64,000 nt of DNA. Source: Phaeosaccion multiseriatum (lineage: Eukaryota > Protista > Ochrophyta, other classes). The notes under the pieces were generated by a model that did no database searches, was not told the DNA's origin, and worked only from the letters and a program-made list of their open reading frames with translations. A program made the translations under genes and the position numbers. This document shows positions 5,236 to 21,923 of this stretch, piece after piece. Every line of letters begins with the position of its first letter. Position 1 is the first letter of the stretch. The stretch spans positions 1,364,001 to 1,428,000 of the forward strand of contig OZ218961.1 in assembly GCA_965112735.1 (NCBI GenBank). The letters run 5' to 3'.

Positions 5236-8077
5236 ATGTTTGTTCGGGCAATCAAGCGTTCTCGTGCTCGGAGGACGTCAGGATGTGTAAAAACCGCAGC
5301 AGCGTGTCCCCATCGCCTCGTGGGAGGAGGAGGTGTTCCTGCTGCTGCTTCCACACACTGGTGGGAAAGATGGGTCTCGACGACCTTCTTCCTCCCAGCC
5401 CCGGTAGATGTTGAGCGACGATCGGCGACTCCCTCGCTCCACCTCCTTGGAACCAGGGGTATGACGGGAGGGACGCAGCAGAGACGAGGTGGTAAGCGTG
5501 CAGAACGACAGAAGCAAGTAGAGCTGACCAAGGAGATCCAGAGACTTGGAAACAAGCGCGACTGGAGGGGGGTGGCGAGAGTGCTTGAGGAAGCGAAGGC
5601 AACGGGGCTTCGAATGAATGTCGTTTTGTTCAGCGCCTCAATAACTGCGGTGGGCAAAGCTGGGCGATGGAAGGGTGCGCTCGCCTTGCTGGACGAAATG
5701 AAGGCAAGCGGCCTCCAACCCAATGTCATCTCGTACAACTGTGCGATTGTTGCTTGTGGCAAGGCAGGAAAGTACGACAAGGCGCTGGACTTGCTGGAGG
5801 AGATGCGGAGGGAAGGGCTTCACCCCGATGTTATCTCGTACAACTCTGCGATTACTGCTTGCGGCAAGGCAGGAGAGCACGAGAAGGCGCTGGACTTGCT
5901 GGAGGAGATGCGGAGGGAAGGGCTGGATCCCAATGAAATCTCGTACACCTCTGCGATTACTGCATGTGGCAATGCAGGAGAGCACGAGAAGGCGCTGGAC
6001 TTGCTGGAGGAGATGCGGAGGGAAGGGTTGAATCCCAACGTCATCTCTTACAGCTCTGCGATTGCTGCTTGTGGCAAGGCAGGAGAGCACGAGAAGGCGC
6101 TTGACTTGCTGGAGGAGATGCGGAGGGATGGGGTTCGACCCAATGAGATCTCGTATACCTCTGCGATTACTGCCTGTGGCAAAGCGGGAGAGCACGAGAA
6201 GGCGCTTGACTTGCTGGAGGAGATGTGGAGGGAAGGGCTCGCGCCCAATGTAATTTCGTACAACTCTGCGATTGCTGCTTGCGGCAAGGCAGGAGAGCAC
6301 GAGAAGGCGATGGACTTGCTGGAGGAGATGCGGAGGGAAGGGCTCGCGCCCAATGTAATTTCGTACAACTCTGCGATTGCTGCTTGTGGCAACGCAGGAC
6401 AGCACGAGAAGGCGCTGGCCTTGCTGGAGGAGATGCGGAGGGAAGGGCTGGATCCAGATGAAATCTCGTACGGCTTTGCGATTGCTGCTTGTGGCAAGGC
6501 AGGAAAGTGCGAGAAGGCGCTGGACTTGCTGGAGGAGATGCGGAGGGAAGGGCTTCATCCCGATGTTATCTCGTACAACTCTGCGATTGATGTTTGTGGC
6601 AAGGCAGGAGAGCACGAGAAGGCGCTGGACTTGCTGGAGGAGATGCGGAGGGAAGGGTTGAATCCCAACGTCATCTCTTACAGCTCTGCGATTGCTGCTT
6701 GTGGCAAGGCAGGAGAGCACGAGAAGGCGCTGGCCTTGCTGGAGGAGATGCGGAGGGAAGGGTTGAATCCCAACGTCATCTCTTACAGCTCTGCGATTGC
6801 TGCTTGTAGCAAGGCAGGAGAGCACGAGAAGGCGCTTGACTTGCTGGAGGAGATGCGGAGGGATGGGGTTCGACCCAATGAAATCTCGTATAACTCTGCG
6901 ATTACTGCCTGTGGCAAAGCGGGACAGTACGAGAAGGCGCTGGACTTGCTGGAGGAGATGTGGAGGGAAGGGCTCGCGCCCAATGTAATTTCGTACAACT
7001 CTGCGATTGCTGCTTGTGGCAAGGCAGGAGAGCACGAGAAGGCGCTGGACTTGCTGGAGGAGATGCGGAGGGAAGGGCTGGATCCCGATGAAATCTCGTA
7101 TAACTCTGCGATTGCTGCTTGTGGCAACGCAGGAGAGCACGAGAAGGCGCTGGCCTTGCTGGAGGAGATGCGGAGGGAAGGGTTCGCGCCCAATGTAATT
7201 TCGTACAACGGTGCGATTGCTGCTTGTGGCAAGGCAGGAAAGTACGAGAAGGCGCTGGACTTGCTGGAGGAGATGCGGACGGAAGCGCTTCAACCCGATG
7301 AAATCTCGTACAACTGTGCGATTGATGCTTGTGGCAATGCAGGAGAGTACGAGAAGGCGCTGGACTTGCTGGAGGAGATGCGGAGGGAAGGGCTTCAACC
7401 CGATGAAATCTCGTACAGCTCTGCGATTGCTACTCGTGGCAATGCAGGAGAGCACGAGAAGGCGCTGGACTTGTTGGAGGAAATGCGAAGGGAAGGGCTT
7501 CAACCCAATGAAATCTCGTACAACTGTGCGATTGCTGCTTGTGGCAAGGCAGGAGAGCACGAGAAGGCGCTGGACTTGCTGAAGGAGATGCGGAGGCACG
7601 GGCTTCAACCCGATGAAATCTCGTACAGCTCTGCGATTGCTGCTTGTGGCAAGGCAGGAGAGCACGAGAAGGCGCTGGACTTGCTGGGGGAGATGCGGAG
7701 GGAAGGGCTTCAACCCAATGAGGTGACCTACCACACCGCTGTCGACGTTCTGTCCCTGCACGGGCAGTGGAGCTCGGCTGATGGCTTGTACGCTGAGGCC
7801 ATCGCACAGGGAGTGTTGTCGCATTGGAAGAAGGGTGACGAAGGTAAAGTCATGGCACGAGCACTCGGAGTGGACCGGCAAGGCCGCCCTTCGATACGCT
7901 CTCCAAGTGGAGAAGGCGAAGGGCCGGATCAGTGTCATCACCGGGCGAGGCCGCGGTAGTGTGGACGGTGTCAGCGTGCTCAAGCCTGCAGTGCTGGCGT
8001 ACCTCAACGAAGAGCTCGGGCTCCACGCCACGGGGCATGCCACCAACGAGGGCCGTGTGATTTTCAAGGCAGGGTAG
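5236..8077 (+). CDS. PPR-SMR protein copy 1 (P-class PPR array + Smr domain); intronless; 5-nt deletion at ~7855 frameshifts off the Smr domain (truncated allele or pseudogene)
   Basis: ATG 5236 (MFVRAIKRSRARR..., Arg-rich, acid-free, mitochondrial-presequence-like). 19 near-identical 105-bp repeats at 5725-7719 (VISYNSAIAACGKAGEHEKALDLLEEMRREGLxPD/N) plus divergent flanking repeats. Smr motifs ITGRGRGS, LKPAV, NEGRV lie in the shifted frame. ATGGCAC here versus ATGGACTTGCAC (MDLH) in copy 2. Confidence 0.92.
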
Positions 8078-8312
8078 AAGGTATCCTCGGTAGAGGGGGG
8101 TACATCAAATAGGAGTGGCTTTAGACTTCAGCGCCACGGGCACAGTTTATTAGACCTTAACCAATAACGAAGTGGAAGGGCGGGTGAGCAGAGAATCACA
8201 GCTGACAACACCCGACTCACGTCTTCAAAAATTATACCTCGGAATTTACACTAAGATTTGGTGTGTGTGTGTGTGTGTGTGTGTGTGTGTGTGTGTGTGT
8301 GTGTGCGTTGGC

Positions 8313-19396: not shown

Positions 19397-21923
19397 CTAC
19401 CCTGCCTTGAAAATCACACGGCCCTCGTTGGTGGCATGCCCCGTGGCGTCGAGCCCGAGCTCTTCGTTGAGGTACGCCAGCACTGCAGGCTTGAGCACGC
19501 TGACACCGTCCACGCTACCGCGGCCTCGCCCGGTGATGACACTGATCCGGCCCTTCGCCTTCTCCACTTGGAGAGCATAGCGAAGGGCGGCCTTGCCGGT
19601 CCACTCCGAGTGCTCGTGCAAGTCCATGACTTTACCTTCGTCACCCTTCTTCCAATGCGACAACACTCCCTGTGCGATGGCCTCAGCGTACAAGCCATCA
19701 GCCGAGCTCCACTGCCGTGCAGGGACAGGACGTCGACAGCGGTGTGATAGGTCACCTCATTGGGTTGCAGCCCTTCCCTCCGCATCTCCGTCAGTAAGTC
19801 CAGCGCCTTCTCGTGCTCTCCTGCCTTGCCACAAGCATCAATCGCAGAGTTGTACGAGATTTCATCGGGATCCAGCCCTTCCCCTCGCATCTCCTCCAGC
19901 AAGCCGAGCGCCCTCTCATACTGTCCTGCCTTGCCACAGCCAGTAATCGCAGAGCTGTACGAAACTACATCGGCGCGAGCCCTTCCCTCCGCATCTCCTC
20001 CAGCAAGTCCAGCGCCTTCTCGTGCTCTCCTGCATTGCCACAAGCATCAATCGCAGAGTTGTACGAGATTTCATCGGGGTGAAGCCCGTGCCTCCGCATC
20101 TCCTCCAGCAAGGCCAGCGCCTTCTCGTGCTCTCCTGCCTTGCCACAAGCAATAATCGCACAGCTGTACGAGATGACGTTGGGATTCAACCCTTCCCTCC
20201 GCATCTCCTCCAGCAAGTCCATCGCCTTCTCGTGCTCTCCTGCCTTGCCACAAGCAGCAATCGCAGAGTTGTACGAAATTACATCAGGGTGAAGCCCGTG
20301 CCTCCGCATCTCCTCCAGCAAGTCCATCGCCTTCTCGTGCTCTCCTGCCTTGCCACAAGCAGCAATCGCAGAGCTGTACGAGATTTCATCGGGATCCAGC
20401 CCTTCCCTCCGCATCTCCTCCAGCAAGGCCAGCGCCTTCTCGTGCTCTACTGCGTTGCCACAAGCATCAATCGCAGAGTTATACGAAATTGCATCGCTTT
20501 TCAGCCCTTCCCTCCGCATCTCCTCCAGCAAGTCCAGCGCCTTCTCGTGCTCTCCTGCCTTGCCACAAGCAGCAATCGCAGAGTTGTACGAAATTACATT
20601 GGGCGCGAGCCCTTCCCTCCGCATCTCCTCCAGCAAGGCCAGCGCCTTCTCGTGCTCTACTGCGTTGCCACAAGCATCAATCGCAGAGTTATACGAAATT
20701 GCATCGCTTTTCAGCCCTTCCCTCCGCATCTCCTCCAGCAAGTCCATCGCCTTCTCGTGCTCTCCTGCCTTGCCACAAGCATCAATCGCAGAGTTGTACG
20801 AAATTACATCGCCTTGCAGCCCTTCCCTCCGCATCTCCTCCAGCAAGTCCAGCGCCTCCTCGTACTGTCCTGCCTTGCCACAAGCATCAATCGCAGAGTT
20901 GTACGAGATTTCATCGGGATTCAGCTCTTCCCTCCGCATCTCCTCCAGCAAGGCCAGGGCCTTCTCGTACTCTCCTGCCTTGCCACAAGCAGCAATCGCA
21001 GAGTTGTACGAAATTACATCAGGGTGAAGCCCGTGCCTCCGCATCTCCTCCAGCAAGTCCAGCGCCTTCTCGTGCTCTCCTGCCTTGCCACAAGCAGCAA
21101 TCGCAGAGCTGTACGAGATTTCATCGGGATCCAGCCCTTCCCTCCGCATCTCCTCCAGCAAGTCCAGCGCCTTCTCGTGCTCTACTGCGTTGCCACAAGC
21201 ATCAATCGCAGAGTTATACGAAATTGCATCGCTTTTCAGCCCTTCCCTCCGCATCTCCTCCAGCAAGTCCAGCGCCTTCTCGTACTTTCCTGCCTTGCCA
21301 CAAGCATCAATCGCAGAGCTGTACGAGATTTCATCGGGTTGAAGCCCGTGCCTCCGCATCTCTTTCAGCAAGTCCAGCGCCTTGTCGTACTTTCCTGCCT
21401 TGCCACAAGCAGCAATCGCACAGTTGTACGAGATGACATTGGGTTGGAGGCCGCTTGCCTTCATTTCGTCCAGCAAGGCGAGCGCACCCTTCCATCGCCC
21501 AGCTTTGCCCACCGCAGTAATTGAGGCGCTGAACAAAATGACATTCATTCGAAGCCCCGTTGCCTTCGCTTTCTCAAGCACTCTCGCCACCCCCCTCCAG
21601 TCGAGCTTGTTTCCGAGTCTCTGGATCTCCTTGTTCAGCTCTATTTGCTTCTGTCGTTCTGCACGCCTACCACCTCGTCTCTGCTGCGTCCCTCCCGTAA
21701 AACCCCTGGTTCCAAGGAGGTGGAGTGAGGGAGTCGCCGATCTTCGCTCAATATCTACCGGGGCTGGGAGGAAGAAGCTCGTCGAGACCCATCTTTCCCA
21801 CCAGTGTGTGGAAGCAGCAGCAGGAACGCCTCCTCCTCCCACGAGGCGATGGGGACACGCTACTGCGGTTGTTGCCCATCCTGACGTCCTCCGAGCAGAA
21901 CGCTTGATTGCCCGAACAAACAT
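19397..21923 (-). CDS. PPR-SMR protein copy 2; intronless; intact Smr domain but two 1-nt deletions (~19972, ~19715)
   Basis: ATG 21923 MFVRAIKRSARR. 16 near-identical repeats at 21437-19759 (span 16x105-1). Smr domain VMDLHEHS..ISVITGRGRGS..LKPAVLAYL..NEGRVIF. Both deletions shorten 3-nt homopolymers, so they may be consensus errors (842 aa if corrected). Confidence 0.92.

Follow-up and report, generated by a model that had tools for sequence, protein, structure and literature searches.

Two inverted, frame-broken PPR-Smr paralogues with near-uniform repeat arrays in Phaeosaccion multiseriatum, probable young pseudogenes of a recombination-reshuffled family

Introduction

Designer PPR proteins are built by repeating one consensus unit in which two residues are changed. 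Two loci in a 64,000-nucleotide stretch of the Phaeosaccion multiseriatum genome (hereafter the window), each carrying an array of nearly identical PPR repeats and a Smr-like tail, raise the question of whether a stramenopile encodes natural counterparts of such proteins, and whether these loci are working RNA nucleases, as an earlier note on this DNA had proposed. To our knowledge, among natural PPRs only the PPR-SMR proteins have been shown to bring an RNA-cutting domain of their own, and sequence-specific RNA endonuclease activity among them has been shown for SOT1 only. A wild designer-like family with many paralogues and both Smr motifs would offer ready-made scaffolds, would give a natural experiment on PPR specificity evolving through recombination, and would allow a test of the plant PPR code beyond plants.

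Results

Layout of the two loci

The two copies are single-exon paralogues in inverted orientation. Alignment of one to the other (blastn and MAFFT) placed the edges of homology at 5178-8145 on the forward strand (copy 1) and 21991-19329 on the reverse strand (copy 2). The copy 1 unit extends beyond the gene by about 58 bp on its upstream side and 68 bp on its downstream side. The spacer between the copies (8146-19328) is rich in microsatellites and contains, on the reverse strand, exons of unrelated intron-bearing genes, one TH1/NELF-C/D-like (14196-14594) and the other a WW-domain ORF (16425-17639).

Copy 1 opens with a start codon and an N-terminal leader and unique region of 128 codons (5236-5619), followed by a divergent first PPR repeat (5620-5724), which differs from its copy 2 counterpart at 2 bases, and by regular repeats 2-20 (5725-7719; 19 × 105 bp), which were delimited by Tandem Repeats Finder, repeat register, Pfam PPR and PDB matches. 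A degenerate capping repeat and linker then run to the ATG expected before D-L-H (7720-7854). In copy 2, on the reverse strand, the start codon and leader region (21543-21923) precede PPR repeats 1-15, which share the first reading frame (19968-21542) and end at a stop codon (19967-19965).

Uniform P-class arrays and their predicted code

Tandem Repeats Finder reported a 105-bp period in both arrays, with 19.1 copies, 88% matches and a score of 2959 at 5716-7720 (copy 1), and 16.1 copies, 86% matches and a score of 2454 at 19757-21446 (copy 2). By translated sequence both arrays are P-class PPR of the textbook type, matching Pfam PPR_2 at E 5e-227 (copy 1) and 1.6e-164 (copy 2) and PF13041 at 734.5 and 534.4 bits (cut-off 30) over 20 and 15 stretches, respectively. 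Among the 34 regular repeats, mean pairwise identity is 79% at the protein level and about 88% at the DNA level, and the near-identity within each array that had been described is thereby borne out (79% mean protein identity, 86-88% DNA matches). When each array is compared with itself shifted by 35 residues, identity over the best 175-residue stretch reaches 0.85 in copy 1 and 0.81 in copy 2, compared with 0.69 or less by the same measure in proteins longer than 250 aa among the 144 retrieved.

In the register of designer PPRs, residues 5 and 35 of copy 1 read SN, ND, NN, TN, SN, TN, NN, ND, GD and NN in repeats 1-10 and SN, SN, NN, ND, NN, ND, ND, SN, ND and SN in repeats 11-20. The string previously derived for repeats 1-20, AUYAAAYUGYAAYUYUUAUA, was regained exactly from these pairs, as was the copy 2 string, AUGUGUUUYUUGYGUGY, with repeats 16-17 read in their own frame behind the frameshift; SD pairs are indeed absent from copy 1 and occur five times in copy 2. 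All 34 regular repeats carry code-competent pairs (ND 13, NN 8, SN 5, SD 5, TN 2 and GD 1), residue 5 being drawn only from N/S/T/G and residue 35 only from N/D. TN and ND are pairs with biochemically validated bases (PMC6468296). By the residue-5 rule, asparagine prefers pyrimidines and serine apparently purines. Our readings of NN, SN, SD and GD combine this residue-5 rule with the earlier note's assignments, GD being tentative; the code applied is plant-derived and may not be that of the stramenopile, and both strings are predictions. Since the two copies have termini in common but unrelated array interiors, these predicted RNA strings truly differ.

Termini and the Smr domain

The termini of the two copies, described earlier as nearly identical, are 95-98% identical. 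Within the N-terminal 127 codons there are 17 base differences and one codon indel, with a pN/pS of about 1.1 across the N-terminal regions; the 30 codons of cap and linker are without any difference; and the 73 codons of the Smr part contain 4 base differences (1 nonsynonymous, 3 synonymous). The cap holds a conserved LY..A...G...HW block common to PPR-Smr relatives. Of the first 40 leader residues, 8 are basic and none is acidic, and hydrophobic runs do not exceed 4, a composition that agrees with the mitochondrial-like presequence previously suggested and has no signal-peptide core. Except for one weak PPR match, the leader showed no relatives outside the source genome.

The tail is, by profile and modelled fold, a genuine subfamily-2 Smr domain, as had been recognised from its letters. 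Its profile matches the Smr domain of N4BP2/B3BP (E 1e-10), its relatives are PPR+Smr proteins, and the AlphaFold model of the copy 2 domain (pLDDT 83.8) retrieves the Smr domains of B3BP, PAP2/pTAC2 and MutS2 as best Foldseek matches. Against Pfam Smr itself, the copy 2 tail scores 20.7 bits, below the cut-off of 25.7, and the copy 1 remnant (ORF 7781-8077) scores 17.9 bits. Both characteristic motifs are present in copy 2 (MDLH, 19627-19616; TGRG, 19534-19523; reverse strand), while copy 1 keeps TGRG but lacks the D and L of MDLH. These motifs correspond to LDXH and TGXG, which typify subfamily-2 Smr domains (PMC3858433, PMC6662315) and govern DNA and RNA cleavage by SOT1 (PMC6662315).

Frame-breaking lesions

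In neither copy do the PPR array and the Smr domain share a frame, and the claim that the arrays are fused to Smr fails on three deletions. In copy 1, a 5-bp deletion between 7854 and 7855 (GACTT in copy 2), identified by pairwise alignment and translation, removes the D and L of MDLH and causes a frameshift, with the resulting ORF ending at 7957-7959; the Smr remnant (7856-8077) no longer shares the frame of the array, begins with HEHSEW and ends at a stop codon at 8075-8077. The open frame of 907 codons covers the leader and all 20 repeats. In copy 2, a 1-bp deletion at the repeat 15/16 junction (19971-19973; CC where other repeats have CCC) ends the open frame of 652 codons after repeat 15 and leaves repeats 16-17 (19759-19968) readable in a shifted frame only. 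A further 1-bp deletion in the capping repeat (19714-19716; GG where copy 1 has GGG) puts the linker and complete Smr domain (19397-19693; 98 codons) into a third frame, all on the reverse strand. Independently built contigs from public runs of two studies match the window exactly at the first copy 2 lesion, and, for the second, three runs of a single sample gave spanning contigs that show no difference; read-contig support thus covers the copy 2 deletions, while the copy 1 deletion is taken from the window sequence.

Both copies are accordingly PPR-SMR members by sequence ancestry and broken members as encoded. As the frameshifts sever the array from the nuclease tail, both are most likely young pseudogenes rather than the working nucleases that had been proposed, copy 1 having also lost the motif D and L. 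The lesions look recent, given a single nonsynonymous against three synonymous differences in the Smr part.

Variable columns and reshuffled interiors

The reported toggling of position 5 (N/S/T/G) and position 35 (D/N) is correct in that both vary, but positions 33 and 9 vary more. Ranked by entropy, the columns run 33 > 9 > 1 = 5 > 16 > 17 > 35 > 6, which places columns 5 and 35 joint third and seventh of 35 (across 34 non-independent repeats), and 11 columns reach at least about 0.8 bits. With columns 33 and 9 more variable and column 1 equal to 5, variation is not limited to two residues as in TALEs, and the description of the arrays as TALE-like does not hold, columns 16 and 17 varying too. 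Comparison of nearest-neighbour repeats gave 49 nonsynonymous against 18 synonymous codon changes, close to the neutral ratio; columns 9 and 33 changed most often, above 5 and 35. Columns 5 and 35, which are 2 of the 35 columns, take 7 of the 49 nonsynonymous changes, about 2.5 times their expected share; no positive selection specific to them was seen in this comparison of nearest-neighbour codons among the 34 repeats. The pN/pS is 0.28 for scaffold columns and 1.26 for variable ones, several of which have amino-acid changes without any synonymous change.

Repeat-by-repeat comparison found no diagonal linking the array interiors of copies 1 and 2; between copies, terminal repeats alone pair up, and the mean repeat difference is 12.6 and 12.7 within arrays versus 13.2 between them. 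An internal duplication at an offset of 7 repeats is present in both arrays, with pairs 1 base apart. Position 35 is linked to position 33 and to position 1 of the next repeat as fixed cassettes (Cramer's V 0.76), and these junction cassettes form a limited set (e.g. LDPD|EI, five times, and LHPD|VI, four times). We infer that the arrays were rewritten by recombination of this small cassette set. The likeness to recombination-driven RFL evolution drawn in the earlier note is apt in the light of the paired termini, non-matching interiors and offset-7 duplications.

Family size and relatives

The family is multi-copy and appears to number tens of copies. Between 295 and 2329 contigs per public run align to 801 bp at an identity of at least 90%, and summed depth relative to the flank, which is not a copy number, is 16-43x over the Smr part and about 1000x over the repeats. 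The best full-length matches come from brown algae and their relatives (30-50% identity), and the tail is 35-50% identical to any relative found. Judged from these matches, the host, a GC-rich alga whose genes contain introns, is probably an ochrophyte stramenopile. PPR-SMR proteins in heterokonts have already been published (Liu et al. 2013, PMC3858433).

Discussion

Origin of the two copies

We propose that the two copies are probably young pseudogenes, or at best PPR-only derivatives, of a large, lineage-specific P-class PPR-Smr family that undergoes birth and death and is reshuffled by recombination. Unequal crossing-over and gene conversion would keep the 35-residue repeats near-identical, and the same recombination would reorder a limited stock of repeat and junction variants, so that paralogues agree in leader, first repeats, cap and Smr tail and differ in their base-specifying strings. 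For intact members, import into an organelle would be most likely, and leader composition makes the mitochondrion the better guess; there they may bind single-stranded RNA at one base per repeat and, by analogy with SOT1 in chloroplasts, could place a Smr endonuclease beside the bound site. Neither copy could do so as encoded: copy 1 has a full 20-repeat array but loses its frame inside the Smr catalytic motif, and copy 2 stops after repeat 15 and has a second break ahead of the Smr domain.

It is unlikely, in our estimation, that both loci are working genes, whether as RNA binders made of PPRs only, acting to stabilise, block or recruit, or with frames restored in the transcript. Open frames of 907 and 652 codons might suggest as much, yet a 105-bp repeat without stops should yield long ORFs in whichever frame it is read, and the opposite strand of copy 1 likewise has an ORF of 809 codons. 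Every repeat does keep the PPR consensus and a P-class-readable residue pair, the Smr part is nearly unchanged between copies, and RFL proteins function without a nuclease domain (PMC5075784). Against this, the N-terminal regions differ with a pN/pS of about 1.1, three independent frame breaks across a neighbouring pair of copies are consistent with decay, and no mechanism is known that restores a 5-bp deletion within a catalytic motif. The arrays might also owe their uniformity to satellite-like amplification and concerted evolution, with the variation at 5 and 35 an old polymorphism free of selection for new targets, a reading that we consider distinctly improbable. The near-neutral nearest-neighbour changes (49 nonsynonymous, 18 synonymous) led by columns 9 and 33, the travel of position 35 in cassettes with 33 and the next position 1 (Cramer's V 0.76), and the offset-7 block duplications of both arrays speak for it. 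The constrained scaffold (pN/pS 0.28), several purely nonsynonymous variable columns, the code alphabets kept at residues 5 (N/S/T/G) and 35 (N/D), and the roughly 2.5-fold share of nonsynonymous changes at these columns (7 of 49) do not.

A very improbable reading is that of a conflict or defence system, in which RNA nucleases that can be re-aimed at RNA viruses or at selfish transcripts of organelles draw on broken copies as conversion donors. A large, fast-reshuffling family with pseudogenes would resemble RFL and resistance-gene clusters (PMC5075784), both Smr catalytic motifs are present, and copies 1 and 2 are damaged in different parts; but no selection specific to the code residues was seen here. 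Broader, and in our judgement still quite doubtful, is the notion of natural, recombination-reprogrammable RNA endonucleases, of which intact members would cut organellar or foreign RNA where residues 5 and 35 direct them and broken copies would serve as a cassette archive for conversion into expressed genes. Silent pseudogene archives that feed antigenic variation offer a parallel for such an archive. Under the preferred reading of recent pseudogenes in a reshuffled family, copies 1 and 2 add that the family undergoes birth and death, and, as both window members are decayed, claims of function belong on intact paralogues.

Comparison with known systems

The closest relatives in architecture are the plant PPR-SMR proteins (SOT1, GUN1, SVR7/ATP4, PPR53 and pTAC2/PAP2) and their heterokont counterparts (PMC3858433), which have the array, cap and subfamily-2 Smr domain found here, including LDXH-type and TGXG motifs (here MDLH and TGRG); the fold of the tail matches the Smr domains of PAP2 and B3BP. 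SOT1 is the model for a PPR-SMR protein cutting RNA beside its binding site (PMC6662315). Repeats of plant and heterokont PPR-SMR proteins are degenerate, whereas those described here are 79% mutually identical; the tail here is without the final helix present in many relatives; and, unlike the known systems, the copies here are frame-broken. Arabidopsis has about 8 PPR-SMR proteins and dinoflagellates have 1-5 (PMC12787238), compared with apparently tens here.

The RFL clusters of flowering plants share with these loci a plausible mitochondrial-type leader, as predicted from sequence, but their repeats are far less uniform and they have no nuclease domain. Diversifying selection at 5 and 35 is documented for RFL proteins, while no selection specific to these columns was seen among the 34 repeats here. 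We know of no cytoplasmic male sterility or similar conflict in the source alga.

The analogies to TALEs and to Chlamydomonas NCL OPR-RAP proteins hold as to mode and not as to membership. TALE arrays consist of near-identical tandem modules, as here, but their fold is unrelated and nearly all of their variation falls in two specificity residues; the NCL OPR-RAP proteins are clustered, fast-evolving organellar RNA-binding paralogues whose domains are unrelated to PPR-Smr. Across the whole PDB, the arrays match designer PPRs (dPPR 5i9d and 5i9f-h, cPPR 5orm/5orq and dPPR10 6een) best (E 1e-126) and align with them repeat for repeat, including dPPR-U8A2, so that residues 5 and 35 coincide in register. 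About half of the positions of the dPPR unit differ in the natural consensus, and the natural repeats also vary at columns 33, 9, 1, 16, 17, 13, 22 and 30, but in both cases one scaffold is repeated and the code residues are changed.

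Two inverted copies of a PPR-Smr unit

We identified two arrays of 105-bp period with Tandem Repeats Finder, one at 5716-7720 (19.1 copies, 88% matches) and one at 19757-21446 (16.1 copies, 86% matches). Comparison by blastn and MAFFT showed both to be parts of one duplicated unit in inverted orientation, with copy 1 at 5178-8145 on the forward strand and copy 2 at 21991-19329 on the reverse strand, and with homology between them running from about 58 bp 5' of the common ATG to about 68 bp past the common stop. The units share a single-exon layout, in which a 128-codon leader and a divergent PPR repeat 1 precede regular 35-residue repeats, followed by a degenerate capping repeat and linker and then a tail of about 75 residues. 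Copy 1 has 19 regular repeats, and copy 2 has 14 that are complete and in frame, a 15th with a broken end, and a further two past a frameshift. A tblastn search of the whole window found no other leader, repeat or tail fragments.

The surrounding DNA has a GC content of 55-64%, is rich in microsatellites, and carries eukaryotic genes that are split by introns. Between the copies, on the reverse strand, lie unrelated exons at 14196-14594, with a weak TH1/NELF-C/D-like match (E 2e-4, below the cut-off), and at 16425-17639, where the encoded protein has two WW domains (E 2e-15). The genome thus contains intron-split genes, and the PPR-Smr genes are single-exon by contrast. An (AGGG)n microsatellite also separates the copies (17916-18681, 766 bp, 96% matches) and, like a perfect (AGG)121 tract of 364 bp at 27209-27572, gives long spurious open reading frames on both strands. 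Adjoining copy 2 are two FNIP-type leucine-rich repeat genes (22081-24279 and 33225-34739; Pfam FNIP E 6e-95 and 3e-50), whose arrays of 123-bp, 41-residue units (22861-24170 and 33946-34645) are near-identical in tandem, at 82-85% matches, as in the PPR arrays. An open reading frame at 62907-63926 on the forward strand carries two domains, middle and C-terminal, of a tRNA 2-thiouridylase of the MnmA/TrmU type; its relatives are mostly bacterial-type and fall below 40% identity, and it is probably the final exon of a gene for organellar tRNA modification. Eight open reading frames of the window had no exact entry in the protein collection searched. No part of the stretch resembles a toxin, an effector or a virus of animals or crops.

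Uniform repeats and their predicted RNA code

Translated, both copies give very strong matches to P-class PPR arrays, with 734 bits (copy 1) and 534 bits (copy 2) against PF13041. Across the whole PDB, synthetic designer PPRs match the two arrays best (dPPR-U8A2 and others, E 1e-126) and align with them repeat for repeat, so that the residues 5 and 35 read in the earlier note are the code positions of solved complexes. From these residues we reproduced, letter for letter, the two RNA strings that it had derived from repeats 1-20 of copy 1 and 1-17 of copy 2, and confirmed that the SD combination is used five times in copy 2 and never in copy 1. Residue 5 is drawn exclusively from N, S, T and G, and residue 35 from N and D. 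The bases read by TN and ND are validated, and N at position 5 favours pyrimidines (PMC6468296); by our reading, S or T at position 5 would favour purines. Readings other than TN and ND are extrapolated from these position-5 rules together with the assignments made in the earlier note.

The uniformity of the arrays, which had been contrasted with the degeneracy of typical PPRs, holds up in comparison. The 34 regular repeats average 79% identity at the protein level and about 88% at the DNA level, and identity at a 35-residue offset over the best 175-residue stretch reaches 0.85 and 0.81 in the two copies, against a maximum of 0.69, in a dictyochophyte protein, among those of 144 retrieved proteins that exceeded 250 residues. 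Within the library searched, we found no description of natural PPR arrays of equal uniformity. A designer-like scaffold, joined to an Smr domain with complete motifs, on which paralogs carry different predicted RNA strings is real and unusual as anatomy.

A divergent Smr tail and a basic leader

The C-terminal tail scores 20.7 bits against Pfam Smr, below the cut-off of 25.7, and HMMER, run exhaustively against 1.84 billion representatives, returned only 25 relatives, all weak (35-50% identity, best E 8e-9). The relatives that were scanned are mostly proteins combining PPR with Smr, several of them above the Smr cut-off. The assignment as an Smr domain, proposed previously, is upheld by the complete MDLH and TGRG motifs of copy 2, by the match of a profile of aligned tails to the Smr structure solved for human N4BP2/B3BP (E 1e-10), and by an AlphaFold model (pLDDT 83.8) that resembles the Smr domains of B3BP, PAP2/pTAC2 and MutS2. 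PAP2/pTAC2 is a PPR-SMR subunit of the plastid RNA polymerase. Unlike many relatives, which have a final helix, the window proteins stop directly after the last strand. A metagenome scan for close tail relatives yielded one weak match of 25 residues. In SOT1, RNA cleavage requires the TGXG motif and DNA cleavage requires LDXH (PMC6662315; PMC3858433).

The termini of the copies are nearly identical, as had been stated. The cap and linker (30 codons) show no differences, the 73-codon tail shows 4 base differences, and the 127-codon leader shows 17 together with one codon indel. In the Smr part one difference is nonsynonymous and three are synonymous, while the leader has 13 nonsynonymous and 4 synonymous differences (pN/pS about 1.1); these small counts fit a tail that was constrained until recently and a leader that is fast-evolving or relaxed. 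A sequence search with the N-terminal 165 residues found no relatives beyond one weak haptophyte PPR match. The first 40 leader residues contain eight (copy 1) or six (copy 2) basic and no acidic residues, are rich in S, T and A, have no hydrophobic run longer than 4, and appear to lack an ER-type signal peptide. Plastid import in an alga with complex plastids needs such a peptide, and a mitochondrial presequence, as suggested earlier, would thus be the better guess on composition.

Both loci are broken

Neither copy retains an open frame through to the Smr domain. Copy 1 lacks 5 bp between 7854 and 7855 (GACTT in copy 2), a deletion that removes the D and L of the MDLH motif and shifts the frame. 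Its predicted product consists of the leader, 20 repeats, the cap and 35 unrelated residues, with a stop at 7959, and the Smr remnant at 7856-8077 lies in a different frame from the array. In copy 2, one C is missing near 19972, where repeats 15 and 16 meet, so that the first open reading frame stops at 19967-19965, and one G is missing near 19715, in the cap; these two deletions leave repeats 16-17 and a complete Smr domain in two further frames.

Assembly error could explain the copy 2 lesions, which are homopolymer deletions, and we weighed it with contigs built independently from four public runs and placed on 19300-20100. Both sites are crossed by contigs of three runs from a single sample, and the site near 19972 also by a run from a second study, in every case with zero differences from the window. 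Agreement among independent contigs at both sites, at one of them in a second study too, rules out assembly error, and the copy 2 lesions are real DNA. The 5-bp loss in copy 1 would not be typical of sequencing error, and an intron that bypasses it is ruled out, since the missing codons belong to the conserved MDLH motif itself and genes of the family have a single exon. The claim that these loci encode PPR-Smr nucleases consequently fails at both, because neither can make the fusion protein.

Over the same 801-bp stretch, between 295 and 2329 contigs per run align at no less than 90% identity, and summed depth relative to unique flank is 16-43x over the Smr part and about 1000x over the repeat core, which is not a copy number; we read this excess only as suggesting tens of paralogs. 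Contigs of other paralogs over 19435-19623 show numerous different Smr tails within this genome, among them one from the run of the second study with a 6-base deletion at 19507 and one that reads MDLS instead of MDLH. Decay of Smr motifs may be common in the PPR-Smr family.

Variation beyond the code residues

The earlier note had likened the repeats to TALEs, with two code residues toggling on a constant scaffold. Both columns do vary, but the chief variable sites lie elsewhere: column entropy is highest at 33 (2.70 bits) and 9 (1.70), followed by 1 and 5 (1.34), 16, 17, 35 (0.99) and 6, which rules out a strictly TALE-like reading and makes the label too narrow. Over all columns the repeats have a pN/pS of 0.68, with 0.28 for the scaffold and 1.26 for the eleven variable columns, several of which, including 5, show amino-acid changes without any synonymous change. 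The 17 nearest-neighbour repeat pairs, which are not independent, differ at 49 nonsynonymous and 18 synonymous codons, an approximately neutral ratio. Their changes fall eight times in column 9, six in 33, five in 5 and two in 35, so that columns 5 and 35 together receive about 2.5 times their share, with the same non-independence of pairs. Variation is thus only partly directed at the code residues.

In the repeats at 5725-7719 and 19759-21437, column 9 (A, D, T, V or I) is the most frequent site of change between nearest neighbours, ahead of 5 and 35, and would, from helical periodicity, lie one turn below residue 5 in helix a. Repeat positions 9-13 read xACGK, reminiscent of the SACEK motif of dinoflagellate and heterokont PPRs (PMC12787238).

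Proposed recombination of repeat cassettes

The arrays correspond between copies at their terminal repeats alone, with 2 base differences in repeat 1 and 6 each in repeat 2 and in the last regular repeat. For interior repeats the mean difference is as large between copies (13.2 of 105 bases) as within them (12.6 and 12.7), and no diagonal linking the two arrays was found. Given that the flanks diverge by just 4-5%, about 5 differences per repeat would be expected had the repeats remained in place, so the interiors have undergone rearrangement or replacement. Block duplications at an offset of seven repeats are found in copy 1 (repeats 3-8 and 10-15 differ at 7, 8, 1, 5, 6 and 10 bases) and in copy 2 (repeats 3-6 and 10-13 differ at 6, 1, 1 and 8). 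The same 735-bp offset spans 5830-7299 and 20282-21332, with closest pairs one base apart, and the blocks of the two copies are unrelated to each other.

Repeat junctions form a small recurring set of cassettes, among them LDPD|EI, LHPD|VI, LNPN|VI, LAPN|VI, LQPD|EI and LKSD|AI. A strong association ties residue 35 to residue 33 (Cramer's V 0.76), and none ties it to residue 5 within one repeat (V 0.33, p 0.29); crossovers in the invariant core would therefore freely reassort the code pair. The proposed re-aiming fits recombination among a vocabulary of cassettes, within a family undergoing birth and death, better than it fits a toggling of two residues.

The best full-length matches, at 30-50% identity, come from brown algae (Ectocarpus and Scytosiphon), Chrysoparadoxa, Tribonema and dinoflagellates, and a stramenopile host, as named in the earlier note, is on these matches probable. 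The MnmA-like frame, the cluster names of the closest tails and the protein-atlas taxa gave no further indication of lineage. PPR-SMR proteins were reported from brown algae and diatoms in 2013 (PMC3858433), and dinoflagellates have 1-5 per species (PMC12787238). The mode of recombination is the same as that described for RFL genes (PMC5075784), here taken to an extreme.
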